Below, piece after piece: positions 26,284-53,305 of a DNA stretch of 64,000 nucleotides (positions are counted from its first letter, which is position 1; each line of letters begins with the position of its first letter). The stretch comes from Macrostomum lignano (lineage: Eukaryota). The stretch is from the NCBI GenBank assembly GCA_002269645.1, contig NIVC01001153.1, positions 62,001 through 126,000 on the forward strand. The letters are read 5' to 3'. The notes beneath the pieces are model-generated. The model did no database searches and was not told the DNA's origin. It saw nothing but the letters and a program-made list of their open reading frames with translations. The position numbers were made by a program, and so were the translations under genes.

Positions 26284-29200
26284 ATGTCTCAGCGAAAGTT
26301 TTATCCAACCCATTGTTGGGTGCCTCAAGGATGCTTTGATCTTGTACCACGCCATGTAAGTTTTCCTATACATTGACACAGTTCATAAAGTATATTTTTA
26401 GGCTTAAAATACAATATTCCAGATCGTGATGAGCTTATGGTCTAAGTAATTTAATATTTATAAAATATTCCTCTCATGATTCATGTTAAGACCAAATGGC
26501 AAAAGAATAGGCTTAAATAAGAAACTGGCCCAAATGATGCCAACTGCAGCATAAAAAAAGAAAAAATAATGTTAAATTTGTCAAGATGATAGTTTTAGAG
26601 AATATCAAATATACATGTGATGTAGATGGCATATTGCAGAAAATATAGGCCAAAAAATCATGGCATATGAATGCTTTACTGACTGGCATATATCTAGCAA
26701 ACAATTTAACAAATGCTTTGGTTTGGCTCATGTACATTGGGTTTACAAGAAGAAAATGCAACTTTCTGGCACCATTATTGGCTTAAAGTTCTTAACCAAA
26801 CTTGTTTAAGCTTGCAATGCAGTGTAAAACAGCTTAAAGAATATGATATCATTATATAAATAAATTATGCTAAGCAATCTTTTGCTATAGACTTATTAAA
26901 GTTAATTTCAAAAGATGACAATAAATTTGGTTTTCAAATAATACACAAAAATTTTCTATTGTTACGAATAAAAAATGAACTTAGATCAATGATACAATAT
27001 ATATAAATTTTTGTTCTATTAATTATTTCCATTTTAATGATATAGGCCTAGCCTTAGGCCCCCTATAGGTTTCATATTTTGCAAGAATTAGGCCCTATTT
27101 ATAGTGTCTATTGCTTATTGCATTTTTTCTATGTTTGTTAGTCCTGGAATTTTTATTGGTACATAATTTATTAAAACACTTGATTGGCATACTATTCTAG
27201 CATATATTTTACTTGATAGCCAAATACTTTTTAGTATATATATATGATCCACAATATGGCATGTAGAATGCAAATGGAGGTATCTAAATTGAAACCAATT
27301 TTTATTCCTTCTAGGCCTCTATGTTTTGGTTATAAACATTGAGTTTTAGTAGGCAGAATTAAAAAAAGCTTGCTTGCTGGCTTTTATATTTTTAACTTTT
27401 TGCTAATTGAATTGCTAGCTCTTTTGCTATGCATTACAAATGCAAGCCAATTGTTTTATTGTGTATAAACTATCTAGATTAACTGTATATAAAATTAGGT
27501 ACATAGTTTTTAATTCAGTTACACAAATAGATTGTATTCACTTTTAAATTAATTGCTAGTTCAAATAAACCTAGTCCTAAATGATAAATGTTAATACCTT
27601 TAATTAACTAGAATGTTAGTTTTTCAAAATTGTCTATAAATTTATTTGGTCCCATTAACTTTACTTTGTTAGAAGTAAAAAAACAATACTTTCATTAATT
27701 TTAGGCAGACAAAGATGAAAACTATGCTCAGTTGTTGAATGATGAGGCTGCCAAAGCAAGACGAGACCTGTAAGTCTTAATTGTTTTTAACTTGACTTTG
27801 CAAATCAATATTTTAAATATAAACTGCTAAGATTAGGGTAAAGGTAATGGTGCCCACTCATATACAGGCTATATAATGGGGCTATAGCACCGACTAAAAG
27901 ATCTGAGGAGAGGGTCAGCAGCCACTGAAGGATCTGAGGGGAGGGGCAGCAGGCACTGAAGGATCTGAGGGGAGGGGCAGCAGGCACTGAAGGATCTGAG
28001 GGGAGGGGCAGCAGGCACTGAAGGGTCTGAGGGGAGGGGCAGCAGGCACTGAAGGATCTGAGGGGAAGGGCAGCAGGCACTGAAAGGTCTGAGGGGAGGG
28101 GCAGCAGGTACTGAAGGGTCTGAGGGGAGGGGCAGCAGGCACTGAAGGATCTGAGGGGAGGGGCAGCAGCCACTGAAGGATCTGAGGGGAGGGGCAGCAG
28201 GCACTGAAGGGTCTGAGGGGAGGGGCAGCAGGCACTGAAGGGTCTGAGGGGAGGGGCAGCAGGCACTGAAGGATCTGAGGGAGGGGCAGCAGGCACTGAA
28301 GGATCTGAGGGGAGGGGCAGCAGGCACTGAAGGATCTGAGGGGAGGGGCAGCAGGCACTGAAGGATCTGAGGGAGGGGCAGACAGAATATCCCATCATGG
28401 TTATCAACAGTTCAATGAAGAATTCTCAAAGAGCTGTGAGCCAACAGCTCAACACAACCAACTCAAACAAAGCTACTTCTCTGTAAATTTAGCCAAGCTG
28501 CCAGAGCCGCTGCCGCAGGACAGTCAGGCGGCGAGGTCATGGACGCTGACGCTGGCGGCGACGCTGAGAACGAGGCGCCAGACGACGATGACGAAGACAT
28601 TGACGACATCCAGCCGGCTGATGCAGACGCGGCTGATGACGGCACAGACGACGAGGACGACGAAGACGAGGACTCCAAGCTGGTGCCAACAGACAATCTG
28701 GTTGTCGTTGCCCAGGTGCAGCAGAACCAGGGCATCTCAGAGGCTCAAATACACGTTTACAATGAGCCTAATAAGCAGTTCTACGAGCACAGGTGCTTCT
28801 ATTTGGACTCGATGCCGCTGTGCTTCGAATTTGTTGGCAGGGGCGGTCACCTGCTGGCTATTGGCAGAATGGAGCAGTCCATTCAGCTGTGGGATCTGGA
28901 CTTGATCGAGGCTCTGTTGCCGTCTGTGCAGTTGGAAGGCAAGTGTGCACTTTTTATGTACAGAGAGTGTACATGCTTGACGATTAGACCGTCAATCAGG
29001 GCCGTTGAGCACTCTGTGTGAGCGTGTCTTTAGCCTGGAATTAACGAAAGGGGTGATGATGGAATGCTTGAGAGATTCGTTAAGAATGTCCAGCAGTTGA
29101 AGTTTGCTCACTGTTCGAGGTTTGGTCACCTGGTGCAACCTGTTGAAGGTCCAGAAGCTCCGGCTTTGAAGCTCCGGCTTTGATAAAATTTGGATGCTTG

Positions 29201-31931
29201 GCAAGGCTGCACTAAGGCGAAGTGCTGATTGGCGCACAGGGGTGTACATTGAGTATCAGAATCGTTGATTATCTCGACGGTCGGGAAGGCTGGCGACTTG
29301 ATTCTTGTTTGCGTTTGCCTTCAGTTCCGAATTGGAACTCTATTGAATAAATACTATCCGCTATCCTCAGGTCACAAAGACGCTGTGTTGGACGTTTCCT
29401 GGAATCCGCGCTCCCCCCAGGCTCTGGCCAGCGCCAGCGCCGACAAATCTGTGGGCCTGTGGGATCTGGACGCTAAGCGTTGCGTCAGGATGCTGGACAA
29501 GCTGCACTCTGACAAGGTGCAGTGCCTGGCCTGGCACCCGCAGGTAATGCAGCTCGGCTGTGAGATAGCATAGCGAGAATCGCCCTCAAGGCAACCCCAA
29601 GAATCGCCCTCAATACAACCCCAAGAATCGCCCCTCAAGTCAACCCCAAGAATCACCCCTCAAGTAAACCCCAAGAATCTCCCTCAAGACAACCCCAAGA
29701 ATCGCCCTCACGACAACCCCAAAAATCTCCCTCACGACAACCCCAAAAATCGCCCTCAAGACAACCCCAAAAATCGCCCTCAAGACAACCCCAAGAATCG
29801 CCCTCCAGACAACCCCAAGAATCGCCCTCAAGACAACCCCAAGAATCGCCCTCAAGACAATCCTAAGAATCGCCCTCCAGACAACCCCAAGAATCGCCCT
29901 CACGACAACCCCAAAAATCGCCCTCAGGACAACCCCAAAAATCGCCCTCAAGACAATCCTAAGAATCGCCCTCCAGACAACCCCAAGAATCGCCCTCAAG
30001 ACAACCCCAAGAATCGCCCTCCAGACAACCCCAAAATCGCCCTCAAGACAACCCCAAGAATCGCCCTCAAGACAACCCAAAAAATCGCCCTCCAGACAAC
30101 CCCAAGAATCGCCCTCAAGACAACCCCAAGAATCGCCCTCCAGACAACCCCAAGAATCGCCCTCACGACAACCCCAAAAATCGCCCTCCAGACAACCCCA
30201 AGAATCGCCCTCAAGACAACCCCAAGAATCGCCCTCCAGACAACCCCAAAAATCGCCCTCCAGACAACCCCAAGAATCGCCCTCAAGACAACCCCAAGAA
30301 TCGCCCTCACGACAACCCCAAAAATCGCCCTCAGGACAACCCCAAGAATCGCCCTCAAGACAACCCCAAGAATCGCCCTCAAGACAACCCCAAGAATCGC
30401 CCTCAAGACAATCCTAAGAATCGCCCTCCAGACAACCCCAAGAATCGCCCTCACGACAACCCCAAAAATCGCCCTCAGGACAACCCCAAAAATCGCCCTC
30501 AAGACAATCCTAAGAATCGCCCTCCAGACAACCCCAAGAATCGCCCTCAAGACAACCCCAAGAATCGCCCTCACGACAACCCCAAAATCGCCCTCAAGAC
30601 AACCCCAAGAATCGCCCTCAAGACAACCCCAAAAATCGCGCTCAAGACAACCCAAAAAATTGCCCTCAAGACAACCCCAAAAATCGCCCTCAAGACAACC
30701 CCAAGAATCGCCCTCCAGACAACCCCAAGAATCGCCCTCAAGACAACCCAAGAATCGCCCTCAATACAACCCCAAGAATCGCCCTCAAGACAACCCCAAG
30801 AATCGCCATCCAGACAACCCCAAGAATCGCCCTCAAGTCAACCTCAAAAATCGCCCTCAAGACAACCCCAAGAATCGCCCTCAAGACAACCCCAAGAATC
30901 GCCATCCAGACAACCCCAAGAATCGCCCTCAAGACAACCCCAAGAATCGCCCTCCAGACAACCCCAAGAATCGCCCTCAAGACAACCCAAGAATCGCCCT
31001 CAATACAACCCCAAGAATCGCCCTCAAGACAACCCCAAGAATCGCCATCCAGACAACCCCAAGAATCGCCCTCAAGTCAACCTCAAAAATCGCCCTCAAG
31101 ACAACCCCAAGAATCGCCCTCAAGACAACCCCAAAAATCGCCCTCCAGACAACCCCAAGAATCTCCCTCACGAGAACTCCAAGAATCGCCCTCCAGACAA
31201 CCCTCGCCCCTCAAGTCAAACTCAAGAATCGCCCTTCAAGTCAAACCCAGGAATCGCCCTCAAGACAACCCCATGAATTACGTACACTAACAAGTTAATC
31301 GATTTCATATATTCTAATCTCGCTACTTGTTAGTAGGCAGAAGAACCGCTGAAATAAGAATCTCTACTAATAAATTTGATAGGAGCCTCACCTATTGCTC
31401 ACTGGCGGCTACGACTCAACAGTTCGTCTGTCAGACTGTCGAGCCCCTCAACAACAACAGCAACAGTCAGCATCTTCAGCCTCATCAGCGCCAGCCGCCG
31501 GCTCCGCCCCATCGTGGCGTCTTGACGGCGAATGCGAGCGCCTAGTCTGGGACAGCCGGAATCCGTTCTTCCTGATGGCCTCAACCGAGCGTGGCTCCGT
31601 GCAGCGCTGCGACGCCCGAGCCCCCGGCGCCCCCGTGTCCACCCTGACTGCTCACGACGGAGCCTGCAGCGGCCTCTGCCTGACCGACTCCGGCCTTCTC
31701 TGCACCGGCGGGGCCGACGGCCTTGTCAGACTGTGGCGCTCCAATCCCGACGGCGAATGGAAGTCCTTGGCTAATAGAAACTGGAACATCGGCGAGGTGA
31801 CTAAATTGACAGTGAACCCTGACTGTCAGTGCGTGCTGGGGATTACTGGGCTGACCGGATTTCAGGTGTGGGACGTGCGGGAGCACGCCAAGGCTAGGGA
31901 GTACCTGCGGACCAGAGGGGTGCCTGTCTGA
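26284..31931 (+). CDS. PWP1: Periodic tryptophan protein 1 (WD40), exons 26284-26355, 27705-27769, 28493-28938, 29371-29543, 31383-31931
   Basis: N-terminal CWVPQG..P, acidic tract, DNLVVVA, HVYNE, PLCFE, LWDLD, GHKDAVLDVSWN, LASASADKSVGLWDL, HSDKVQCLAWHP, LLTGGYD; all phases compatible, with one GC-AG intron. Confidence 0.88.
27895..28380. repeat. 30-bp G-rich minisatellite (GGGAGGGGCAGCAGGCACTGAAGGATCTGA)
   Basis: About 16 copies in PWP1 intron 2; same family at 36775 and 52110. Confidence 0.95.
29575..31275. repeat. 24-bp minisatellite (GACAACCCCAAGAATCGCCCTCAA)
   Basis: About 70 copies in PWP1 intron 4. Confidence 0.95.
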
Positions 31932-32019
31932 CTGCTCTGCGATCGGCTGGGCTTTGGGCGAGAGTCTGTCTACTGTGGCTAGGCAAGTAACTGGGTGAAT
32001 TCTCAAGTTTAACATTTGG

Positions 32020-32595
32020 CCTTCCAGATCCTCAGTTGCTGGGCCAGCCCCCAGATCCTCAGTTGCTGGGCCACCAGCCCCCCAGATCCTCAGTTGCTGG
32101 GCCACCAGCCTCCCAGATCCTCAGTTGCTGGGCCACCAGCCTCCCAGATCCTCAGTTGCTGGGCCACCAGCCTCCCAGATCCTCAGTTGCTGGGCCAGCC
32201 TCCCAGATCCTCAGTTGCTGGGCCACCAGCCTCCCAGATCCCCAGTTGCTGGGCCAGCCTCACAGATCCTCAGTTGCTGGGCCAGCCTCCCAGATCCTCA
32301 GTTGCTGGGCCAGCCTCCCAGAGTGTCAGTTGCTGGGCCAGCCTCCCAGATCCTCAGTTGCTAGGCCAGCCTCCCAGATCCTCAATTGCTAGGCCAGCCT
32401 CCCAGATCCTCAATTGCTAGGCCAGCCTCCCAGATCCTCAGTTGCTGGGCCAGCCTCACAGATCCTCAGTTGCTGGGCCAGCCTCCCAGATCCTCAGTTG
32501 CTAGGCCAGCCTCCCAGATCCTCAGTTACTAGGCCAGCCTCCCAGATCCTCAGTTGCTAGGCCAGCCTCCCAGATCCTCAGTTGCTAGGCCAGCG
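32020..32595. repeat. ~28-bp minisatellite, same family as 1035-1625
   Basis: About 20 copies starting ~90 bp after the PWP1 stop codon. Confidence 0.95.
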
Positions 32596-34400: not shown

Positions 34401-34704
34401 GGGAATTATTCTCTTATCTCCTCTGATCGTTGCACTCTTCGTGTTAATAATGATATAGCTAGAATTCCTCACTTTTATAATTATAATCAAGCAGTTCTAC
34501 ATGTACAACTTTCAACTTGGTTGCTGGTATTTGCGCATTAATTTTTTTATGAACCATCACGCTTTGTTGCTCTGTTGAAGCGAGCTCTCATCTCATTTTT
34601 ATTTCTCTCTAACGGTTTATTTGCGATTCAATTAATCAGTTGTTAGTCTTGTGTCATTAAAAGTCCTTCAATCAGTCCTTGCTGAACGGGACGCATCGAT
34701 GTTC

Positions 34705-37700
34705 TCAGCTGAGCAGCTGCCTCTCCAAGTTGACGGAGTTCAGCATGGCTCCGTAGCAGGCACCGACGCACCGGTTGGTGGCCGCGCGGGAGCCCAGCTG
34801 GTTGCAAGGGGCGCGGCACTCTGCCGGCAGCGGCAGGCCCATCTCCTCGAAGAACAGCCGCATCAGGCGTGTCTCCGAGCGCAGCACCGCGGCGTCGCGG
34901 ACTCCGCCTCGACAGTTGCGACCGGTGGCAGCGCATTCCGCCGTGGCTGCTGGGTCTTCGTCAGCCGCCTGCTTGGATCATGGGTTTGCGCGAGATCTGC
35001 TGTTAAGCTACTTGTAGTAGCATTCATCTTGCCGCCAGTGTTGAATGCTGTCGCTTTTCTCTATGTGCTGCCTTTCTCTCTCTCTCTCTCTCTCCCTTTT
35101 CCCTCATTGTCTCCCTTCTCTCCCTCTCTGTCTCCCTTCTCTCCCTCTCTGTCTCCCTTCTCTCCCTCTCTGTCTCCCTTCTCTCCCTCTCTGTCTCCCT
35201 TCTCTCCCTCTCTGTCTCCCTTCTCTCCCCCTCTGTCTCCCTTCTCTCCCTCTCTATCTCCCTTCTCTCCCTCTCTGTCTCCCTTCTCTCCCTCTCTGTC
35301 TCCCTTCTCTCCCTCTCTATCTCCCTTCTCTCCCTCTCTGTCTCCCTTCTCTCCCTCTCTGTCTCCCTTCTCTCCCTCTCTATCTCCCTTCTCTTCCTCT
35401 CTGTCTCCCTTCTCTCCCTCTCTGTCTCCCTTCTCTCCCTCTCTATCTCCCTTTTCTCCCTCTCTATCTCCCTTTTCTCCCTCTCTGTCTCCCTTCTCTC
35501 CCTCTCTGTCTCCCTTCTCTCCCTCTCTATCTCCCTTCTCTCCCTCTCTGTCTCCCTTCTCTCCCTCTCTGTCTCCCTTCTCTCCCTCTCTATCTCCCTT
35601 CTCTCCCTCTCTATCTCCCTTCTCTCCCTCTCTGTCTCCCTTCTCTCCCTCTCTGTCTCCCTTCTCTCCCTCTCTATCGATTCTCTCCCTCTCTATCTCC
35701 CTTCTCTTCCTCTCTGTCTCCCTTCTCTCCCTCTCTGTCTCCCTTCTCTCCCTCTCTATCTCCCTTTTCTCCCTCTCTGTCTCCCTTCTCTCCCTCTCTG
35801 TCTCCCTTCTCTCCCTCTCTATCTCCCTTCTCTCCCTCTCTGTCTCCCTTCTCTCCCTCTCTGTCTCCCTTCTCTCCCTCTCTATCTCCCTTCTCTCCCT
35901 CTCTATCTCCCTTCTCTCCCTCTCTATCTCCCTTCTCTCCCTCTCTGTCTCCCTTCTCTCCCTCTCTATCTCCCTTCTCTCCCCCTCTGTCTCCCTTCTC
36001 TCCCTCTCTGTCTCCCTTCTCTCCCTCTCTGTCTCCCTTCTTCGCCCTCTATATCTTCTCTAGTCCATCTTCTGTCATTTCACCATTAGCCTGTTTCTAA
36101 TTAATTGAAATTACTCTAAGACAGATTTCTCTCGAACGCTGAGACACAGACAGTGTTAGAGATGAAGTGACAGGTAAGTCGAACTGTTCAAATTAGGAAA
36201 TCAAATGAAGGGATCAAGATCTTGACTTGACTTGATAATCCCTCCCCTAATATTTAATCTTCGAGAGGCTTAACGAATCCCAAAAGAATTTGCCATTTAC
36301 TCTGACGCGTACGGAGAATGAACAAAGATGGGAATTATGAAACTAGCGAAGCTTTCTTTCTTTTCAAAGAAATCAGACATTTTCTGCAGCCCAAGAATTT
36401 GACAATTGGCAAATTTGCACAATTATCAGCAAGAATATGGCATTAAGTTAGATCATTGGTGGTTATGCAAATTGCTTAGGGTGGACTTATAGTGATAGAT
36501 TTTCATGTGTTAGTTCAGGTCTGGATCAAGGCTTACGGCCTTTCTAGCAAGCCACAAAATGTGTGCTAAGCGGGCAGCTAAATCTCAATTTGCTTAGCAA
36601 TTTTTTATTGCTAACTTTCCGTTTTCTCAGCAAATATCGCTGATTGCTAATCGGTGATAAGATGCAGTCAGAAGGGTTTCTCTGATTGGTATAAATTGGA
36701 TCTTGTTCATGGAAGCTAGTTCCTGTTCCAGCTAGGTCTCGGCTAAAATGAATCAGCGAATAAAGGATTGAATCCGCAGGCACTGAAGGATCTGAGGGGA
36801 GGGGCAGCAGGCACTGAAGGATCTGAAGGGAGGGGCAGCAGGCACTGAAGGATCTGAGGGGAGGGGCAGCAGGCACTGAAGGATCTGAGGGGAGGGCCGC
36901 AGCAGGCACTGAAGGATCTGAGGGGAGGGGCAGCAGCCACTGAAGGATCTGAGGGGAGGGCCGCAGCAGGCACTGAAGGATCTGAGGGGAGGGGCAGCAG
37001 GCACTGAAGGATCTGAGGGGAGGGGCAGCAGGCACTGAAGGATCTGAGGGGAGGGGCAGCAGCCACTGAAGGATCTGAGGGGAGGGCCGCAGCAGGCACT
37101 GAAGGATCTGAGGGGAGGGGCAGCAGCCACTGAAGGATCTGAAGGGGAGGGGCAGCAGCCACTGAAGGATCTGAGGGGAGGGCCGCAGCAGGCACTGAAG
37201 GATCTGAGGGGAGGGCCGCAGCAGGCACTGAAGGATCTGAGGGGAGGGGCAGCAGGCACTGAAGGATCTGAGGGGAGGGGCAGCAGGCACTGAAGGATCT
37301 GAAGGGAGGGCCGCAGCAGGCACTGAAGGATCTGAGGGGAGGGCCGCAGCAGGCACTGAAGGATTTGAGGGGAGGGGCAGCAGGCACTGAAGGATCTGAA
37401 GGGAGGGCCGCAGCAGGCACTGAAGGATCTGAGGGGAGGGCCGCAGCAGGCACTGAAGGATCTGAGGGGAGGGGCAGCAGCCACTGAAGGATCTGAGGGG
37501 AGGGGCAGCAGGCACTGAAGGATCTGAGGGGAGGGGCAGCAGGCACTGAAGGATCTGAGGGGAGGGGCAGCAGGCACTGAAGGATCTGAGGGGAGGGGCA
37601 GCAGGCACTGAAGGATCTGAGGGGAGGGGCAGCAGGCACTGAAGGATCTGAGGGGAGGGGCAGCAGGCACTGAAGGATCTGAGGGGAGGGGCAGCAGGCA

Positions 37701-37917
37701 CTGAAGGATCTGAGGGGATCGAGGGGCAGCAGGCACTGAGGGATCTGAGGGGAGGGCCGCAGCAGGCACTGAGGGATCTGAGTTGAAGGCAATATGACAC
37801 TGTGTACATGGTCTTTCTGTTTGATTACATGCACTACAAACTTACAGTAACGGGTGATCCACTAGCAACGGCTTCTAGAAGCAGTAGAGCCAGACCTAAA
37901 GAGAACATCAGCTGCAT
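34705..37917 (-). CDS. Small secreted 6-cysteine protein of unknown family (exons 37917-37846, 34968-34705; 111 aa)
   Basis: Exon 1 [24 protein letters not shown] ends at GTAAGT (phase 0). Exon 2 follows CAG (phase 0): [22 protein letters not shown]...ECRAPCNQ...[11 protein letters not shown]...LLS*. Confidence 0.65.
35065..36045. repeat. 21-bp polypyrimidine/polypurine array (CTCCCTCTCTGTCTCCCTTCT)
   Basis: About 45 copies, almost all C/T on the + strand. Confidence 0.95.
36775..37780. repeat. 30-33-bp G-rich minisatellite (same family as 27895)
   Basis: About 32 copies in the intron of the secreted-protein gene. Confidence 0.95.
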
Positions 37918-39503
37918 GTTGTTGCTTTGCAAAAGTTCTCGCGGAGAAAAATTTGATGAGTTCTATTTAATGTGAATTTTTATACAATATCTTGTAAGTC
38001 GAGATGAGCAAAGAAGGAGGGATGCAGCTGCTTGAGACTAGAAATTTATGACAGGGCCATCTTCATAATTCCGCTTTGCCTCCACGTCCCCTGCGCATAT
38101 AGGCTCCGCGCGATCTATCTGTTTTGTGATTGGATTGCCATGCCAGAGTAAGATAAACGAGTGAGTGACTATCAGTGATTGGCTGCATGGTTGCATGTAT
38201 TAATGTCGCTGATTCTGTGTATAGCTATTTAGCTAGCTACTTTATTAGCTCGTAGTTATTCTTCTATACATTTATATCTTTGTGCGATAATATGATGGGA
38301 ATAGGGCTTATCGTGACTTAGTGTAATTACATGTGTACATGTATATATTTTAGCTGCAATAACAACACAAAATACGCTGTAACTTGTCAGTCTCAGCTGC
38401 AGCTATTATAGTTTAGTACTCGTAATCATATATCTAGAACGATAAAACATACGCTCGTAGAAATTAGATCTAGACCTATCGATTTATTTAAGATTATCTA
38501 TCCCGCCGCTATGAGCACACTTTGAGCATCTTAGAGGCTATATATGTACATCAAAGATTTAGAACCCTAGCCTAAACTGCCAGCCGCCAACTCAGCGTGT
38601 TTTAGCTTGGAGTGTACATATACGTGCTACTGCACCGTTTGCTCTCTCGATCCCCTGTTTGAACTTGTTCGACTCTACGAGAACTATATATGCGTTATAC
38701 ATGTATATTAATAATTCAACGAAATATTACTAGCTAAATAATTTTCTATTTTAATTACTGCCTTGACTATGACCTATATTCTATAAGGTTCGAAATGCAT
38801 TGCATTGGCCATAAAATAAAATAAAAACAATTGTAGCAAGTTTATGTTTGTTCTCGATCGTTTCATTCTATCAATCTTTATTAGTGAGCTTACTCAACCA
38901 GAACTTTAGCTGTCGTATTCTGGTCCCTGACCAAACGCAAAAATACTGTGGATGTAATATTTAATCTATTCCCCCCAGTCCGTTTTCGTTGATACTGTGG
39001 TTCATTGTTAAACATCAGACGATCGAGTCAATATGCATAATTAATAGTCATATATCACATGTACTCGTATATATTGCTACTAGTTCATTCGATAAACACG
39101 CACTTCTCGGAGTTAAACTTGCGTTCATTTGAGTTCATTATCATTTGATTGAAGGCTGGCTAATGCACTAATTTCTCGTAATTAACTAACAGTTATAGCG
39201 CAACTTTTTTTATCCCCTGCAGGTTAAATTATATATAATCTGCGATGTATTTAGACAAATTTTATAAATAACGAGGTGCCCAAAGAATGTTTTTATAGTC
39301 AACTTCTTTACACAGTTTGTATTTTAATATAAACTTTTACAAAAACTCATATTGTAAATTTGTTTTACTTTAGAAGCAAAGATTGCTTTGAACAGGCGTG
39401 TCTTAACTTTCACGTCGTCCACAACGCATGTAATCATTACTTTAACTTAAATAGTTTGATCTAGAGTCATTTAGTCTGTATTAATGAGTTTTTTGTGAAT
39501 AGA

Positions 39504-42500
39504 ATGGGTTCTGAAGAGGATATTGACGTAAGCGGGGAAGACTTTACTGACCCCGATGACTTTGTGGATGATATCGACGACAAAGGTAAGCCCATAGGTC
39601 ACCCCATGCGGATACAAACGAAGTCAAGACTAAAAAAACGTGCGCAAAATCTTTAAAAGAATTAATGCTACTAGTTAAACCGTAGAATGAGAATGCTTAT
39701 ACTTATTTTATACTGATTTTTATTTAAAAAACAGATTTTAATTTATATATTATAATCATATTCTTAATCTTCTAGATAGTTAGTGTAACTTTCTGACAAT
39801 GGTATTAGTGTTTGTCCATTTATTAGATTTCCTAACTGTTTAGATTATCTTTCATCCTATAAAGGTCTGGCAAAAGTTTGAAAAATGGAAAATCAAAAGT
39901 ATTTTATCATTATAAACTTTAAAGAAGTCCAATTGCTTGTACGATTATAACTATAAGACTAAGATTATAAACTTGCATGGGCCTGTCAGTATCAGTTTGA
40001 CATCTTTGTTTACAATCATATAGGCTTAATTATTATTTGGCAATAGTACAGTTTTGTTCATGAAATTATTTTTTGTTTAAATTTGAAAGTTTAAAACCAA
40101 AAAACAAAAAACAACAATGTTTTAAACTATTCTAGCGACTGTGCCAGAGCTCACTGGTCACAGAATTTTAAAGCAAATGGGCGCTCTATTAATATACTTT
40201 TTTCATTAAATTTGTGCCACGCTTAAATGCTACTTGAAATGCAAGTTGTCTATGGAAAAAATAGTTTAAAAAATCAAAAAGGGGCTTAAACTGTTTCCCT
40301 TTAGCTAAGAAGCTGCTAATATCTGTTTTTTCTTTTGGACAACATATTGTATCATGGCTGGACAACCACTAAGACCCTTGTGGATAATTCCACCGAATGA
40401 AGTGCTGCCAGCAAATGCTCTACCGCAATTAGAGCTAAATGCGCACAACCTGATGGCTACCAAAAGTGCACCAGATGCTGTCTGCAATTTTACAACTTTT
40501 TCCTATAGGGTGCCAACATAAAAAATAGTAAGAAAATAAACGTCAACAAAAACATAAAAAGTAAACTTTGTTTAATTCAAGCCAATGCGTTTCGTCAAAC
40601 ACAAGATGTCGTCAAGGCAAATTTAATCAACCTAAGATCATACCACCAATATATTTAAGCAAAAATCACTGTATTGTCTAGAGAGGGGTCAAAACAGTCT
40701 AGTAGAATTAAGAAAGTGCCAAGTACACAACAAAGTGAGAGAGAAAAAAATAATAAAAAATAGGCACGGCTCTGCTCACAATACTCTTAGTAGAGGTTGG
40801 ACGGGATTGAAATCTTTGGGCGGGATTGGGATTGGGAATAACTTTTTTCTTGGGATTAGGATCAGGATCGGGATTCAGGAATTGAGATCAGGTCTTTTAG
40901 TGTATTGTCCATGTAAAGTTAAACAAAATTGAGAAAAGATTGTCAAGATCAAGAAGTAAAACACAACAAAATTGATATGAAGTTTTGTAACCAACAAAGT
41001 AAATAATGTAACAAGTACAAGTTAAAGCAAAATACCTTCAAGTAATCACTAATTCTATAAATTATTAATTGAAAGACCTGTTCCTGAATCTCAAGTTTTT
41101 TAGGGTCGGGATTCTGGTCCCACGGGAATTCAATTTTCCTCGGGATCCCAAGATTTCGGGATCCCGTCCGACCTCTAACTCTTAGCTCACGTTCCACCCC
41201 ATTGCCAACAAGCTGCACATTCAGGTTGGGTTTGTGCATTCTGATATACGAAGCTTCGATAATCTTAAGCTTATGGTCAAATTTGCACCCATCCAGCACT
41301 GTAAAGAGCTGAATTGGTTTACCATCATAGCATTTTTTACAAACAAGCAGATGGTCATTAATTGCAGAGCTTTTTAGCCAATGTTCCCTAGCTCTAGTAT
41401 GTAGGTGTCGCTTTGTTTTTCTAATGTAAGAAATGCTCTGATCCTCAGAGCAGCGAAATTGGTAAACAACACCAGCCCTTAGAGCAAGTGGAACAGCTGA
41501 CTTGAGCCTGCTGGCATAGCGACTGATCTTTTCGGTGCAAAACACAATCCTAATGGTGTACTTAAGCCATTTGCTAAACATTTTCTTAAGTTTTTCCTGA
41601 AGTCAAGCGAAGCGTTGCCAAAAAATAGGAGAACCAACAGAGTGTCCCAAGAATCTATCTCTGGTTGCCTAGGTTTCGCATCGCTAGAAACTTTCTTAGT
41701 GACAAACACATTGATAATATGGCTGACAAAACTGAAAGGGTAACCATTAGATCTAAGGAATTTAGTCAGGGCACGAACCTCTTGGTGAAATAAACTCCAA
41801 GAACTGCTCACCTCGTTGGCTCTATGAAGAAGGCACCTAACTAACCCAGATTTCCAGTGAGTCTTCAGTGAGAGTTTATGTCAGACTCACTGGAAATCTG
41901 GGCATTTGTTAGACAAGCTACACTTCAACATAAAAAATAATTACAATAAGTCCAGAATTGTTTCTACACAAATTTTTAAAAACATATATAATATTATAAA
42001 TATAAAAGTTATATTAAACTTGATAATGGCTGCTGTTTCAATAACTTTGTTTTAATTTTGTTTCTCTTATAAATTGCATTAATGTTTTTTATTTTAGTTT
42101 CCAATTATTTTTAAAAGATTTTATGCTGGGTTTTTTTCGTCCATAACTTGGGTGCGATTTTGCACCCTGTGCTAGATTTCAGGGTGCAATTTTCAAGACC
42201 AGGATGCGCTGCATGTCCATAACACTAAATTGTGAAATATGTATCGCATCCTTGCAAAAAATTCTAGTGCGCTTTTCGCACCCTGAGTCAAATTTTAGGG
42301 TGCAATTTTTAAGACCAGGATGCTATTTGCACCCATTTGCACAAAAAAACCTAGATTTTATATTGGTTAATATCTAACTACACAATTACATTAGCCCTGA
42401 ACTTTGCTATTTTTTGTAGGCCAACTATATACACTTCATTTTAAACCTAAAAATTCTATATGCCAAGTGTACACCAAAATTGTTAGCAATAGCAAAAATA

Positions 42501-45500
42501 TGCTAGAATTTTCCAACATAAAGGCCATTTTCAGGATTATAAGTTTCTCCATGTTTTTTGTAAAAAGTGAAAAGTGAAAAAAATAGCAGATGAAAATCAT
42601 AGTCAAGATCATGGCATGCCTAGCCAGAACACATCAATCAAAAAAGTTTGATTGCACTATGTACCATAACTTTTTTGAAAAAAAAACACAAAAATTAATA
42701 ATTTTCTATTTGAAAAATACTAACAAAACTTGTTTTTGAATTTGTTTCATAGAAAATGCAATGTTATAATAAATTAATTAAGAAGTTGTCAATACACTAG
42801 CAAACAAAGAATGCTAATAAAAAGAAATTATATGCTAATTTTCTGTCAAAGAAAATATCATATACTCATGCACTAGGAAGTTTTGTGTTATATCAAATTG
42901 TGTCAATTTTTATTGTCTTGCACTATACTGTGCTAAATTTTTCTCCCTTGCCTGCTATTGTGCCAGAATGTATCAGCATAGCAAATGTCCAACCTTTTAG
43001 ACTAGAATTTTCCATGAAAAATGCTATCTTCTTGACTTTAAGATAAAAAGATTGCAATAAAATTCACATGAAATATAGTACAAAATCACAGTTAAAATGT
43101 TAAAATCTGCAGTTAAAATTATGTCCTTAAAGCTAAATTTCATAGTACCTCTTTAGATTGTTACTAGAACAACATATAAAAATATATCATATTGTTTCCC
43201 TTTGCTTTGAATATTGTTGGCTAAATTATAAATGAGTTAATTTAATATTGAATATGTTATATTATGTTATGTTATTATGTTATATAAACTTTATCAACTT
43301 TGGATTTAAAATACAATAAAACAATAAAGCTATTAAGAAAAATATTTATCTATTAGCATTGGTTCTAATGTTAAGCTCTAGAATCTAGTCAGCAGTATCG
43401 TTTGTAGCAATGTCACCATACATGCGCAACTGCTGGCCGACCTGGCCGATCTGGCCACCGTAAATTATGGTGGACCAGGGGTAAGTCGCAAAAATTCCCA
43501 GCCTGAAGAATACAGACATAGCACTAATTAGATGACGAGGCATTTATACCTTATAAGACAGTCATAGTTACTCCTGCCGTTTACCCAAAATTGCGTTAGG
43601 GTTTTCTTTTACAGGTAAGTTGCATTTTTGGTCAAAAAGTAAGTCGCATGGCCAGTGTAAATCAGGGGGTTGCGCATGTATGAATGTCACAAATTGTCCA
43701 ATCTTAACCAGTTAATGTTTGCACATTGCTAGGAGATACCCTGGCATCAGTTGATTATTTCTAATGATTTCCAAGATCTGGCATCAGTGGCTGGCAATTA
43801 GTGGCCTCTGGCAATTGTTTCTGCTGATTGCTAGGATCTGGCACTGGCACTTATGGCTAATGATTGGTGGTTATTCGCGATTGGTTCTGATGATTGCTAG
43901 GATCTGACACTAGTGGCTAGTGATTGGTAGCCTCTGGCAATGGGTTCTAATGATTGTCAAGATCTGGCACTAGTGGCTAGCATTGGTGGCCTCTTGTAAT
44001 TGGTTTTGATAATTGCTAAGATCTAGCACTAGTGGCTTGTTATCAGTGGCCTCTTTAGTGGCCTTAGATTCTTCTTAATACAATGGGCATTGCTAAGCTT
44101 AAAGTTAGATTCATATCCCAGCAACCTGCAACATGCCAAAATATAGGAGCATGTGCCTAAGGCAGGGCATATATACATTTTTTAAGATATAGCTACACAC
44201 TATGCATGTTGCTATTCTTGTTTTTCTATGTACAAGTTACCATTTTAGAACATTTTAAGACTAGTTTCATTGACTGGGTTTGAAGACTTGTTTTGTATAT
44301 TTGTGTATTCTAGAAATTTTATAGATGTGAATCCTACAAATTTACTATTTTAGAATTATATATAAATTATAGATATTGATCTATTTTTAAATAGCCTTAA
44401 GTCAGAAGTCACTAAAACAAAGATTACTTTTAGAAGATATCAAGTTTGAAATGATTACAATGGTTAGTAATTAGATTGGTCTTAATTGGTCTTATAGCTT
44501 TTTAAACCCATATCTTTGTTTGGTATAGAGATCCCTTGTTTGGTTGATGATGCTTTATCCTAACTAAATAATTAACAATCTATAGTTTAGACAACCTGAA
44601 CTATCTATGAGTTAGTTTATAAGTTTATAAGGTCAAGTAAGATGAAAACCACAAAGCTAAAGCACTTATAACCCAATAGATTCAAAACTTTGCTTATAAA
44701 GATAGAGACATTAAAACTAGGTCAACTTTGTCTAAGTCTAAGTTTGACTAAGGATTAAGTTTGAATATGCTTACCACAGACTAAGACTGCCACACTTATA
44801 AGTCAAGCTAGGAATTGGGGGTTCCCAAATCATTGCTTTCTTATTGGCTAGGTATAAATCATTTTGCTTTGTGTTTCTTTAGCCAACATTTGTGTTTTTT
44901 GACTCAACTAGAATTATATAAATCATTTTGTAAATCTTTGCTTTTTTGTTATATAGAAACATTATAATGAAAGTATAGTTTTATTTTTTAGCTTAGCTTG
45001 TAAACTGTTTGGAAATAGGAAGATCTATGCAAGAATGCCTTTGTTGGCCTTCTCTATACATAATCCTTTCCTTGACTATATAATTCTCTAGCTAAAAGGA
45101 AAGCAGTGATTTGGGAACCCCTATTCCAAGCTTGACCAAAAAAGTATAGAAGTCTTGGTCTGCCATATCCATAAATATAATTGATAGATCCTGGCAAACC
45201 TAAATCAAGATCATTGCAAACCTTGACTAGGTTATTGACTAGCTAATCAAAAGTAATTAGCTACTATTAAGGTACCTAGATAGATAAATTGTTATATCAA
45301 AATAGGTCCATTTAAAATGAAACATTTTAAAGTATTTTTATATTTTTTGAGTATACATAACTTTTATGCTTTGAAAGAATTATTAGAGAATGAACTTAAT
45401 ACAAAAAGGCAAAATAGAATACAAATAGAATTCTGACATAAGTAAATCAATTCTAGTGAGCAATAGGGTAGTTTACCATGTCTGGGTAGTCTTCTAGGTC

Positions 45501-48500
45501 ACAAATGGGCAAATTATGTACATGTAAATTTCTTGATGATTTCCTTGTCATTATTGGTTTTTTCAAAATGGAGAAAACAATTTTCTATTATTATTCATGA
45601 TAATTTTGGATGAAAACAATTTTTCTAAAAATAAACAAACAGAAGTTAAGCAGAAATACAAATCAATGTTTTGACAAAACTAAATTTGGAGTTTTTTTGC
45701 ATTTGCTATTTATATCCACATTGATTCCACAAAACAGTAATCTGCATCCAAATTTTAGTATGCAAATCTGTTCCATATTTGCATCTATTTTTGCAGTTTT
45801 AGTTGATACTGCTAGGAAGCATTCCTTAAGCTTGTATTTATTTTATATTAGCATTGGCCTATTAACTTCAATTAGTTATGAACTCTTTGATTTAGCATGA
45901 AATTGTTCAGCCCCTTTGTTAGAATTATGTACCAGTGTATGCCAAAATGAAATTTGCCTCCAGCTGCATTGCTAAATTCTGCGCCATCTTCAATGATGAC
46001 TGCTCCACAGCTTTAAGGGAAAGAACCCTCTCAAGTTAATGGTAGGATTTTTCTCTTCTAGTAGCTTCACTTGATAGGCATTGTTATATAAGCTTAAAAT
46101 GAAAGCTAGTTTTGCAGTTGCTTGTCCAGAGTGCTAGCAAAATTGCAGTGACTTAACAAGGCTTTCAGGCTGGCAATAAACCTAGCTAGGCTCTCACTAA
46201 GCTGCTGCAGATGTGTCTGGAACTGAAATCTGATTGCCAACTCAGATGGCTAATGTGTAATGGTCCTCCAGAATCTTAGTCAACTGGGCTAAAGACTTGT
46301 TGGAGACTTTGGCAGGTATAGGTAAACAGGTTTCTCAACATTCTCATCATGCCTCTACTGATGACAAGTGTGGCCACTTTAGCTTTTTCCTTCACTTCCT
46401 TATAGGTTAAGTAATGGTCAAGGTGTTTTAGCCAGACCTCAATATTGGTATTGGCAGTAAGAATTGGAATTTCACTCAGTGCAAAGCTCATTGCCATTGT
46501 AATAAGCCAGCTCATACAATTGGGCTCTTTGTAAGACATGTTTATGGACCCTAGAACAAAAGAAAGGGTGGTTGGCTTGACTGCCCAGACCCCACTATTC
46601 TAGCCACACATGAGATTGCAAACAAACTACCTAGTATAGTGCACACATACAGAAATACATTAGTTAATCAATTACTAGTAAGCTTACAATTAATAACTAA
46701 AAATACACTAGCATAACATTGCAATATCATATGAAAGATCTTCTTTTTTCATCAAAATTTACCTACTTCATCTATTTATATAAAGACTATGCTAAACTGT
46801 GTTTCTAAATAGTTGGAGCCTACAACTTGGGTCCTAATTTGTATGTTTTAGATAAACATGTTTGGTTAGTCTTGTGTTGCTAGAGAATACTGCATAGCAA
46901 TAGTAGACTAAAGTGGCCAGCAAAATACTCTTCTTAGATATTGTAATACTTATTTTTATATCTTAATTTTTTAACACTTTATTTAGGCATTTTGCCTATT
47001 AGATATTATGATTATTTGTTTTTTTGTTAATATCATTGTTTTTAATTCCTTTTCTTGTTATGAACATAATTTAGCATTGTAAAAATAGTTTTTAATTTGG
47101 CCCTTATTGTAGCCAGTCTACTAAACTAAGTCAGATATCCCCTTTTCCTACACTAGACTATGCCAATATGCCATACTATGCCTACTAGAAATGGGATAAA
47201 ATGACTTTTTTAAACTAATTCTATTAGATTGAATATCTGATAGAACCAGTTCAAATACGAAATAATATCAAATATTCAAATATGAATATTTTAATTAATA
47301 ATATCCCTTTAATAGGTAGTAAAACGGCTCTACCTTGAAAAATATCATTAAACTTCTCTTATCTCTCCATGCACGTCTAGAGCTCCTAGGCGACATCCTA
47401 GCTGAGAAGCCCCAGGAGAAGAAAGCTATTAACAATGCATTGGTACTATCCGGCCTACCAATTGTTGATTCAGCCAGAATCGAACGCTTGCAAGCATTCA
47501 TTCGTGACAAATTCTTGGACAAGCATGGCGAAGTGGTCAAGTTTAGCATGCCTACAGATGAGAATGGCAATAGCCTAGGCTTTGCCCTATGCTGCTTTCA
47601 AACTGACCAGCAGGCCTTGGACGCCTTAACCGATATTCAAGGCGCCTCATTGGACAAAATGCACACGCTCAACGTGTTCAAGTTTTCCGACTTCAATCGT
47701 CTAGCCGACGCCGACGACGAATGGAAGCCGCCAGAGAAAGCGCCGTTTGTTGATCGAGGCGACCTGCGCTCCTGGCTGCGCGAGGACCGCTGTCACGATC
47801 AGTTCGGCGTGCTGCACACCGCTGGCAGCGTTGCCACCATCTACTGGCACTGGCCTGGCGATCCGCAGCCAGTGGATTCGGCCACTAGAAATAACTGGAC
47901 TGAGAGCCGGCTGCACTGGTCACCGTTGGGTACCTATCTGGCCACCTACCATACTAAGGGCATCGCTCTGTGGGGTGGCGAGAAGTTCGAGCAGATTAAT
48001 CGATTTCAGCATAAAAATGTGCAGATTATTGATTTTTCGCCCTGCGAGAGGTGCGTACTTAAATTTGCTTCTTTAAACTGAAATTTAGTCTTTCATAAAC
48101 CCGGAGCTTCTGTCCTTGAGTCCCTGTCACACTCTCACCTTTAGTTGTCCTCGAGTCCCTCTCACAAACTGACCTTTAAAACTGTCCTTGATTCCCTGTC
48201 ATATACGCTGACCTTTAGCTATCCTTGAGTCCCTGTCATAAACTCTCACCTTTAACTGTTTTTGGGTCCTTGTCATGAACTTTCACCTTAAACTGTCTCT
48301 AAGTCCCTGTCCTAAACTCGAGCTTCTGTCCTCAAATCGGTCATAAACTCTCACCAACTGTCCTTAAGTCCCTGTAACAAACCCTCACCTTTAACTGTCC
48401 TTGAGTCCCTGTCACAAACCCTCAGCTTTAACTGTCCTTGAGTCCCTGTCACACTCACCTTTAACTGTCCTTGAGTCCCTATCACACTCACCTTTAACTG

Positions 48501-51500: not shown

Positions 51501-53305
51501 GCGATCTGTCATTCTGCTGAACCTGGGAATTGTCCTGCACACCCGTTGAAAGCAATACCGTGACACAGTCGCTAAAAGTCCTTGACAACAACTCACTAGT
51601 CTACGGCTCCAGTCACTTGCGCCGCCCCAGAGTCGTTTTAGAGTCGCAGACAAGAAAAAACGCTTCAAAGTGACTCTTCTTGGCTTGGGTACCATTTTCA
51701 ACGGAACGATCCATCCCCTTGTGTTTTTTAAAAATTGTACTTTTAAAATGATGCATCCAGTTCTGCTTCTGTTTAAAAAAAAAGCTGAAGACAACATTAT
51801 ACCAAATCTATTCTGATTGAAGATGTTAAAACATTACATTTAAAAATCGGCTTTCAAAGCTAAAATTTAATTCTTCATTTGTAAATATTTCAAACAACCA
51901 ATTCTCAGAACATCAAGAAGAACATGAAGACCTACAGTCGCCGGTTCGAGAAAGAGGATCTGCAGTCCTCCACTCGCGCCAGCAAAGAGCTGCTCGAGAA
52001 ACGCGCCCGACTCAAGACCGAGTACGAGAAATGGCGCGCCAAGTTGCTCGAGAAGTTCCGCGGCGAGAAGCAGAAACGCTTGGAGCTGAGAGGTAAGTTA
52101 AGGTCTTAAGGAGGGGCAGCAGGATCTAAAGGGAGGGGCAGCAGGCACTGAAGGATCTGAGGGGAGGGGCAGCAGCCACTGAAGGATCTGAGGGGAGGGG
52201 CAGCAGGCACTGAAGGATCTGAGGGGAGGGGCAGCAGCCACTGAAGGATCTGAGGGGAGGGGCAGCAGTTACTGAAGGATCTGAGGGGAGGGGCAGCAGG
52301 CACTGAAGGATCTGAGGGGAGGGGCAGCAGCATGAAGGCACTGAAGGATCTGAGGGCAGGGGCAGCAGCCACTGAAGGATCTGAGGGGAGGGGCAGCAGT
52401 TACTGAAGGATCTGAGGGGAGGGGCAGCAGTTACTGAAGGATCTGAGGGGAGGGGCAGCAGGCACTGAAGGATCTGAGGGGAGGGGCAGCAGCATGAAGG
52501 CACTGAAGGATCTGAGGGCAGGGGCAGCAGCCACTGAAGGATCTGAGGGGAGGGGCAGCAGGCACTGAAGGATCTGAGGGGAGGGGCAGCAGCCACTGAA
52601 GGATCTGAGGGGAGGGGCAGCAGTTACTGAAGGATCTGAGGGGAGGGGCAGCAGGCACTGAAGGATCTGAGGGGAGGGGCAGCAGCATGAAGGCACTGAA
52701 GGATCTGAGGGCAGGGGCAGCAGCCACTGAAGGATCTGAGGGGAGGGGCAGCAGGCACTGAAGGAGCTGGGGGGAGGGGCAGCAGGCACTGAAGGATCTG
52801 AGGGGAGGGGCAGCAGCCACTGAAGGATCTGAGGGGAGGGGCAGCAGTTACTGAAGGATCTGAGGGGAGGGGCAGCAGGCACTGAAGGATCTGAGGGGAG
52901 GGGCAGCAGCATGAAGGCACTGAAGGATCTGAGGGGAGGGGCAGCAGCATGAAGGCACTGAGGGATCTGAGGGGAGGGGCAGCAGCATGAAGGCACTGAA
53001 GGATCTGAGGGGAGGGGCAGCAGGCACTGAAGGATCTGAGGGGAGGGGCAGCAGGCACTGAAGGATCTGAGGGGAGGGGCAGCAGGCACTGAAGGATCTG
53101 AGGGGAGGGGCAGCAGGCACTGAAGGATTTTGAAGGCCTACAAAGAGCCGCCAATGCCGCACTGACCCCTGAACCACCTGACACCACAGGCGTGGACACG
53201 GACGAGCTGGACAGCAACGCGCAGGATTTCGTAGAGGAGACGCTGGAATTCCCCATCAAGGTGGAACGCATTCGCATTGACAAGCTGCCCCAGGTTGCTG
53301 AGTAG
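39504..53305 (+). CDS. EIF3B: Eukaryotic translation initiation factor 3 subunit B; exons 39504-39585, 47381-48050, 50116-50524, 50867-51484, 51909-52092, 53190-53305
   Basis: [84 protein letters not shown]; canonical phase-compatible splice sites. Confidence 0.95.
40560..41880 (-). mobile_element. 5'-truncated Penelope-like retroelement (RT C-terminus + GIY-YIG endonuclease + 3' tail), interrupted by a MITE
   Basis: HWKSGLVRCLLHRANE...FLRSNGYP (RT thumb) and GVVYQFRC..SYIRKTKRHLHTRAREH...IEASYIRMHKPNLN (GIY-YIG), with a frameshift between them. Confidence 0.85.
40791..41177. mobile_element. hAT-type MITE, 387 bp
   Basis: TIRs TAGAGGTTGGACGGGAT / ATCCCGTCCGACCTCTA (1 mismatch); perfect 8-bp TSD ACTCTTAG. 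Confidence 0.9.
42126..42354. mobile_element. Candidate MITE
   Basis: CTGGGTTTTTTT / AAAAAAACCTAG ends, ATTTTATG/ATTTTATA flanks, internal repeated GGGTGC/GCACCC motifs. Confidence 0.5.
43417..43682. mobile_element. hAT-type MITE, 266 bp
   Basis: Perfect 14-bp TIR CATACATGCGCAAC and perfect 8-bp TSD AATGTCAC. Confidence 0.9.
43740..44070. repeat. Decayed ~58-bp tandem repeat (GATCTGGCACTAGTGGCT...)
   Basis: About 6 diverged copies. Confidence 0.7.
45950..46560 (-). mobile_element. Degraded Ty3/Gypsy-like gag relic
   Basis: IEVWLKHLDHYLTYK..KAKVATL and QQLSESLARFIASLKALLSHCNF resemble retrotransposon gag; interrupted by stops and frameshifts. Confidence 0.55.
48100..50060. repeat. 38/34-bp minisatellite (ACCCTCACCTTTAACTGTCCTTGAGTCCCTGTCACAA)
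   Basis: About 50 copies filling eIF3b intron 2. Confidence 0.95.
50570..50790. repeat. ~30-bp minisatellite (AAATCGCCCTTAAATGTCCCC.TCTGCTG)
   Basis: About 7 copies in eIF3b intron 3. Confidence 0.85.
52110..53130. repeat. 30-33-bp G-rich minisatellite (same family as 27895)
   Basis: About 33 copies filling eIF3b intron 5. Confidence 0.95.

Follow-up and report, generated by a model that had tools for sequence, protein, structure and literature searches.

The minus strand of the window analyzed here, a 64,000-nt stretch of the Macrostomum lignano genome (contig NIVC01001153.1 of assembly GCA_002269645.1), harbors at positions 34705-37917 what we consider, with a probability of about 0.8, to be a real, transcribed two-exon gene for a secreted, disulfide-locked helical mini-protein. 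This gene, Mlig023147, forms a two-locus family with its paralog Mlig023736, and its product is possibly a ligand. M. lignano, a free-living flatworm, serves as a model in research on regeneration, stem cells, bioadhesion and the sexual conflict of hermaphrodites. Lineage-restricted small secreted proteins are the class in which its hormones, gland products and manipulators of seminal fluid would be sought. Mlig023147 is a clean and compact candidate of this kind, with a 9.7-kDa product, one paralog and a probable TATA promoter suited to reporter transgenes.

Exon 1 supplies an N-terminal hydrophobic signal sequence and is followed directly by a minisatellite-filled phase-0 intron, and exon 2 supplies the mature protein. 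In the mechanism that we propose, the mature chain would fold in the endoplasmic reticulum (ER) into a mainly helical structure with three disulfides and would be exported intact, without being cut into small peptides. The elements of the gene are the following.

37846..37917, minus strand: coding part of exon 1, 24 codons (72 nt), specifying the putative signal peptide and the first few mature residues
34969..37845, minus strand: intron, phase 0, 2,877 nt, GTAAGT...CAG
34705..34968, minus strand: coding part of exon 2, 87 codons plus TGA (34707-34705)
37979..37984, minus strand: TATAAA box, 62 nt 5' of the ATG (pattern search)
34621-34616 and 34603-34598, minus strand: two putative AATAAA polyadenylation signals, 84 and 102 nt past the stop codon
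36776..37782, minus strand: 31-nt minisatellite, 31.7 copies, within the intron (Tandem Repeats Finder)
35077..36050, minus strand: 21-nt minisatellite, purine-rich on the gene strand, 46.5 copies, within the intron (Tandem Repeats Finder)

Gene structure

An earlier reading of the raw sequence, made without database searches (the original prediction), had proposed exons of 24 and 87 codons separated by a 2.9-kb, mostly repeat intron. Exons assembled by script from the minus-strand reading of 34500-38100 reproduced this two-exon gene exactly. Exon 1 starts with an ATG at 37917-37915, which according to a pattern search is the first ATG downstream of an in-frame stop, and ends at 37846, with the donor GTAAGT directly after it. 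The acceptor context of exon 2 is ...CCAAGCAG, and the reading frame is picked up again at 34968. Exon 2 holds the complete cysteine framework as well as all predicted helices. Together, the 31-mer and 21-mer arrays account for 1,981 nt, or 69% of the intron. The TATAAA box upstream of the ATG is a probable core promoter.

The open frame of exon 2 was compared with chance expectation. When the exon, which has a G+C content of 69%, was shuffled, 16% of the shuffles were open across 87 codons. The list of open reading frames (ORFs) contains further ORFs in other frames and on the opposite strand at the same locus. An open frame alone is thus unremarkable, and other evidence is needed. The same observations, together with the lack of any match to a known domain, would suit a scenario in which the transcript is real and its ORF is untranslated or non-functional, an accidental frame in GC-rich sequence. 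We regard this scenario as very improbable, and the first argument against it comes from base composition. The G+C content at the three codon positions is 0.68/0.58/0.82, so that the maximum falls on the third position of the proposed frame. This third-position value (GC3) of 0.82 in exon 2 stands beside 0.87 for the whole coding sequence of the paralog and 0.61-0.70 for recognizable neighboring exons.

Database identity and transcription

From end to end, the 111-aa product matches the GenBank entry 'hypothetical protein BOX15_Mlig023147g3' [Macrostomum lignano] with 100% identity. The annotated gene range on NIVC01001153.1 is exactly 34705-37917, the same as that of the proposed gene (the GenBank locus sequence corresponds to the reverse complement of window 24705-47917). 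The gene had been described as hidden, and this description has to be withdrawn: it has been public since 2017 as the uncharacterized BOX15_Mlig023147, and any novelty would lie in its function, receptor or structure. It was hidden merely from the prokaryote-style ORF track, where, as had been pointed out, only a 60-aa piece of it appears (34705-34887). As a point of method, a reading of the raw sequence recovered the exact eukaryotic gene model from DNA for which a prokaryote-style ORF list gives a fragment.

The only source of the GenBank annotation of GCA_002269645.1 was RNA-seq, from which transcripts were assembled both de novo and with genome guidance, and TransDecoder called the ORFs (PMC5730564). 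The presence of an identical two-exon coding sequence (CDS) in an annotation made only from RNA-seq transcripts implies an assembled spliced transcript.

The identical protein is encoded on three contigs of the assembly (protein accessions PAA56986.1, PAA71607.1 and PAA78561.1), with gene ranges of 3,711, 3,213 and 2,562 nt. All three copies agree completely in exon 1, in the first 80 nt of the intron and over 600 nt 5' of the ATG. Exon 2 differs from the other two copies at one and two positions, all of them synonymous and at the third codon position. By comparison, the last 120 nt of the intron show 3-5% divergence between copies, and one 3' flank shows about 3%. The intron measures 3,375, 2,877 and 2,226 nt, with unchanged splice sites, and this variation is explained by minisatellite copy number: the 31-mer is present in 31.7, 31.7 and 24.7 copies and the 21-mer in 68.3, 46.5 and 25.6 copies. 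Three near-identical copies agree with the already known redundancy of the DV1 assembly (PMC5730564). The comparison of the copies gives a weak but consistent indication that the coding sequence is under constraint, and the exclusively synonymous differences speak against an accidental frame.

A single paralog in M. lignano

When 1.84 billion cluster representatives were searched exhaustively with HMMER, one relative only was detected, BOX15_Mlig023736 (P0002), with an E-value of 6e-14 and 52% identity over residues 8-109; the identity between the two proteins is put at 52-58%. A word-indexed search of 5.8 billion proteins, with both the single sequence and the family profile, returned two M. 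lignano clusters and nothing else. A family-motif scan of JGI metagenome contigs produced 135 pattern matches and 0 confirmed relatives.

Mlig023736 is present in three near-identical genomic copies (BOX15_Mlig023736g1-g3; UniProt A0A1I8HWV6) and resides on a different contig (NIVC01000858.1), with other neighbors than Mlig023147. Its gene is built in the same way: a 60-nt signal-peptide exon (...GTGCAG/GTGAGG, the slash marking the exon boundary), a phase-0 intron of 454 nt that also contains a minisatellite, and a 258-nt second exon that alone encodes the mature chain. All six cysteines are found in both paralogs, with a spacing of C-x6-C-x31-C-x1-C-x7-C-x3-C in Mlig023736. Compared with Mlig023147, its Cys3-Cys5 loop is shorter by six residues, and the first CxxxC is replaced by CxC. 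Blocks common to the two sequences are ECAxTGRxCxGG, RLMRLxFxEM, RCVxxCYxAMLxSVNL and the C-terminal QLLS. By region, identity amounts to 77% in the C-terminal helix, 63% from the first cysteine through the central helix and 38% in the Cys3-Cys5 loop. The Nei-Gojobori ratio of nonsynonymous to synonymous substitution rates (dN/dS) between the paralogs is 0.31 for all aligned codons and 0.43 from the first cysteine on. Mlig023736 is devoid of lysine and has a pI of about 6.5; its single RR sits within the conserved CVRRC motif.

These data bear directly on the accidental-frame scenario, since the reading frame, all six cysteines, the signal peptide and the position of the intron are preserved in a 52%-identical paralog at a dN/dS below 0.5. 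Identity to a GenBank CDS on three contigs, the similar six-cysteine paralog and the G+C content by codon position raise the gene above chance. The paralog comparison, GC3 and the transcript-based annotation strongly favor a translated gene under selection over any other reading.

Two observations concern the annotation of the paralog. The GenBank CDS of Mlig023736g3 (locus L004, 6001-6868) is partial, its frame being open 5' of the likely start MRASAAALLLL.... The UniProt model begins at a further-upstream ATG (MKTGRSGQ...) and was automatically named 'FZ domain-containing protein'.

Protein features and predicted fold

The assembled exons yield a product of 111 aa with cysteines at positions 36, 43, 75, 79, 91 and 95, which reproduces the originally reported spacing C-x6-C-x31-C-x3-C-x11-C-x3-C. 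The hydrophobic core at the N-terminus is about 12 residues long (Kyte-Doolittle mean up to 2.55) and gives way to the small residues AVAS, in support of the proposed signal-peptide exon. Judged by inspection, the putative signal peptide would be cut at about residue 18/19 (AVA/S or VAS/G). The N-terminus of Mlig023736 is likewise hydrophobic, with a core of about 12 residues and candidate cleavage sites VQA/S or ACG/F.

The hydrophobic stretch could alternatively be a membrane anchor or an organelle signal, the protein then being intracellular, either in the ER lumen or, as a twin-Cx3C protein, in the mitochondrial intermembrane space. In favor of such a location, Cx3C-x11-Cx3C equals the twin-Cx3C spacing of the small Tim proteins, and the UniProt model of the paralog, with its upstream start, would place the hydrophobic stretch internally. 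On the other hand, no small-Tim family was matched in Pfam at E up to 10, and the first Cx3C is lost in the paralog. Moreover, the stretch lies at the N-terminus, covers about 12 residues and precedes AVAS or VQAS, as in cleaved signal peptides, an in-frame stop lies 5' of the ATG, and the protein has no KDEL-type C-terminus. An intracellular protein appears most unlikely.

The predicted mature chain comprises about 92 residues (9.7 kDa, pI 6.4), with 10 Arg, 0 Lys, 10 Asp+Glu and a net charge of about 0. It contains no KR, RR, KK or RK, no N-glycosylation sequon and no C-terminal Gly, ending in QLLS, and the protein has no repeats or low-complexity stretches. Neuropeptide prohormones are cleaved at mono- or dibasic sites, which frees short peptides that frequently carry a C-terminal Gly as amidation signal. 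Unlike these, the mature Mlig023147 chain offers no dibasic site and terminates in QLLS. Lacking dibasic sites, the sequon and the C-terminal Gly, it is not a classical short-peptide prohormone and would be exported intact.

AlphaFold2 produced a helical model, with a mean pLDDT of 68.7 for the full chain alone and 74.8 for exon 2 with a three-sequence alignment; the pLDDT rises to about 90 in the part of exon 2 that covers its residues 31-50 (mature residues 55-74). The helices in the exon 2 model span mature-frame residues 30-39, 50-67 and 85-110. With a hydrophobic moment of 0.54, the central helix is strongly amphipathic, and it is electrically neutral. According to the model, Cys91 and Cys95 lie within the long C-terminal helix, and Cys75 and Cys79 lie in an inter-helix loop. 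The loop position of the latter pair agrees with the first CxxxC being unconserved in the paralog. The suggestion that both CxxxC pairs are helical thus stands in part: the second pair (C91/C95) is conserved and located in a predicted helix, whereas the first is CxC in the paralog and a loop in the AlphaFold model.

These properties are also relevant to whether the product might be an antimicrobial or defense peptide that damages membranes through its amphipathic helix. It is predicted to be secreted and disulfide-stabilized, it possesses one strongly amphipathic helix, and its CxxxC...CxxxC spacing is reminiscent of helical-hairpin defense peptides. Classical membrane-active peptides, however, are cationic, whereas the mature chain has a net charge of about 0 and a pI of 6.4, and its amphipathic helix is neutral. 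In addition, the first CxxxC is not kept in the paralog, and neither saposin-like nor hairpin peptides were matched in Pfam or by structure. We consider a defense role improbable.

Comparison with known families

Pfam searches at E up to 10 with the full chain, the mature chain and the paralogs revealed no family. A match to the conotoxin O-superfamily (Toxin_18), covering 9 residues at E 4.7, was dismissed as chance. When PDB sequences were searched with the protein and the family profile, a chance match at E 1.6 was all that appeared. Foldseek comparison of two AlphaFold models, both moderately confident, with the PDB yielded best E-values of 4.2 and 3.0, corresponding to unrelated helical fragments. 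Structure prediction and comparison, suggested earlier as a check, thus ended in a helical model with no PDB match below E 3. The orphan status claimed for the protein is borne out by Pfam, PDB sequence and Foldseek searches, its only relative being the M. lignano paralog. The observed lack of resemblance to insulin, eclosion hormone and CHH/ITP also holds, as none of them was matched in Pfam at E up to 10. Since there is no Pfam family match, profile membership in eclosion hormone, CHH/ITP, insulin, saposin, small-Tim and Frizzled families is excluded.

The original prediction had named three outcomes that would speak against it: no spliced transcript, no homologs with conserved cysteines, or a clear hit to a known family. 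What we found instead is a spliced transcript behind the GenBank model, a six-cysteine homolog and no known-family match.

In terms of how the protein would be produced, the closest analogy is eclosion hormone or a saposin-like mini-protein, as a likeness of type and not of membership. Arthropod eclosion hormone, with six cysteines and three disulfides in about 62 residues, is secreted intact. It resembles Mlig023147 in having a signal peptide directly before a helical six-cysteine chain and in secretion without dibasic processing, and differs in length (about 62 versus 92 residues) and in a cysteine spacing other than 6/31/3/11/3; there is no match to the Pfam Eclosion family. Saposin-like proteins share a secreted helical domain of about 80 aa with six cysteines and three disulfides. 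The spacing in Mlig023147 is nevertheless non-saposin, with no match in Pfam, in PDB sequences below E 1 or in Foldseek below E 3.

The CHH/ITP/MIH neurohormones, of about 70-80 aa and usually subject to dibasic processing or amidation, are likewise helical secreted proteins with six cysteines. Mlig023147 departs from them in spacing, in the lack of a Crust_neurohorm Pfam match and in having no dibasic site. Members of the insulin/relaxin family display a B-chain C-x11-C and an A-chain CC-x3-C-x8-C, with a C-peptide between dibasic sites; Mlig023147, by contrast, has no CC doublet, no dibasic site and no Pfam match.

The twin-Cx3C hairpins (small Tim proteins, plant alpha-hairpinins and scorpion CS-alpha/alpha toxins) are defined by two Cx3C motifs 11-16 residues apart. 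Mlig023147 has C75-x3-C79-x11-C91-x3-C95, and its second Cx3C lies in a long predicted helix; the paralog has CxC. Unlike these hairpins, however, Mlig023147 has an N-terminal hydrophobic signal and two extra cysteines, and its first Cx3C is predicted in a loop. Among twin-Cx3C families, there was no zf-Tim10_DDP match in Pfam and no Foldseek match; just the Jug r 2 leader peptide appeared, at E 7.2.

Among flatworm proteins, the taeniid 8-kDa/antigen B family of cestodes has a gene build comparable in outline, in which a signal-peptide exon and one intron precede a second exon for a small, helical, secreted, flatworm-specific protein. That family nevertheless lacks the six-cysteine framework, and the exhaustive search revealed no similarity. 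Finally, the Frizzled cysteine-rich domain (CRD), of about 120 aa with ten conserved cysteines, came into consideration through the 'FZ domain-containing protein' label. It was rejected, as there are six cysteines and not ten, and P0005 had no Pfam match at E up to 10. No Frizzled CRD occurred among the PDB-sequence or Foldseek matches.

Possible roles

We tentatively favor, at somewhat less than even odds, a ligand that is released intact and binds outside the cell, as an internal, hormone-like signal or as one that is transferred or released. Three features lead to this preference: the neutral charge, as opposed to cationic membrane-active peptides; the absence of repeats and low complexity, as opposed to structural or adhesive proteins; and conserved helices and a tail that resemble binding surfaces. 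The contact surfaces would be the two best-conserved parts, namely the amphipathic helix in the center (RLMRLxFxEM) and the C-terminal helix with the invariant QLLS at its end.

A gland product acting outside the worm without signaling is a somewhat less probable alternative. It could be a protein of the seminal fluid or the prostate, or a component of cement-gland, eggshell, rhabdite or adhesive secretions. Gland products are typically encoded by small, lineage-restricted genes that specify a signal peptide and show a TATA box and strong codon bias, as Mlig023147 does. The lack of relatives outside M. lignano would also suit fast-evolving reproductive proteins. Moreover, M. lignano is reported to have many prostate-limited transcripts for putative seminal fluid proteins (PMC5977470). 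Against this possibility, neither gene occurs in the supplements on the seminal-fluid screen or on rapid evolution, which were searched in part and use partly different transcript names. The protein also lacks the repeats and low complexity of structural or adhesive proteins, and purifying selection between the paralogs is moderate.

A more far-reaching version of the ligand reading is that Mlig023147 and its paralog represent an undescribed family of disulfide-locked helical extracellular signaling proteins, restricted to Macrostomum or a narrow flatworm lineage and without a solved relative in fold, acting as hormone, pheromone or seminal 'allohormone'. We regard this as unlikely. Mlig023147, its protein accessions and conserved peptide strings had no match in the paper texts searched.

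Several points weigh against a secreted mini-protein that acts as a ligand. The supplements of the M. lignano papers queried, the long files among them searched in part, contain neither Mlig023147 nor Mlig023736 and yielded no expression site or phenotype for them. The splice junction 37846/34968 is supported solely through the annotation pipeline described in PMC5730564, and signal-peptide cleavage is judged from inspection of the sequence. The AlphaFold models are of moderate confidence and based on a three-sequence alignment. In addition, no ortholog was detected outside M. lignano, hence deep conservation lends no support, and a dN/dS of 0.3-0.4 indicates moderate constraint only.

Genomic neighborhood and other features of the window

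Coordinates of neighboring genes were obtained by mapping the annotated locus of NIVC01001153.1 onto the window.

39504-47917 and beyond, plus strand: gene for a 692-aa WD40-repeat protein, on the upstream side of Mlig023147
26284-31931, plus strand: gene for a 434-aa WD40 protein, on the downstream side of Mlig023147
From 25879 downward, minus strand: gene for a 1,411-aa protein, beyond the 434-aa WD40 gene

None of these neighbors points to a cluster of related secreted genes. Within the bounds of the 434-aa WD40 gene lies a 24-nt array with 71 copies (29576-31278, plus strand), which gives an open frame of 574 codons with PQDNPKNR-like repeats. The range of the 692-aa WD40 gene includes an AT-rich stretch at 38001-46000, with 30-37% G+C compared to about 50% elsewhere, which presumably represents large introns.

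ORFs of 470, 351, 421, 363 and 338 aa overlie the intron of Mlig023147. They were rejected as genes, being translations of the two minisatellites (SLSPFSP... and PSDPSVPAA... repeats).

34651-36063 and 35045-36100, plus strand: minisatellite ORFs (338-470 aa)
36544-37809, 36743-37834 and 36753-37769, minus strand: minisatellite ORFs (338-470 aa)

An ORF of 97 aa at 34643-34936 was also rejected, since it runs through exon 2 in a different frame and is a by-product of the high G+C content.

The 31-nt minisatellite of the intron (unit ACTGAAGGATCTGAGGGGAGGGGCAGCAGGC) is additionally found at 27893-28381 and 52121-53128, and a 28-nt array is present twice, at 1035-1624 and 32019-32594. Both resemble dispersed families of minisatellites, which a mobile element may carry. 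At 14655-15541, 59 copies of the 15-mer CAGAGGCGCCAGCAC are arranged with 100% matches and no indels, an unusual homogeneity compared to the 80-96% matches in other arrays. Finally, positions 51743-51819 on the plus strand match the C/D-box snoRNA snR61/Z1/Z11 in Rfam, with 45.6 bits against a gathering score of 45 and an E-value of 0.0015.

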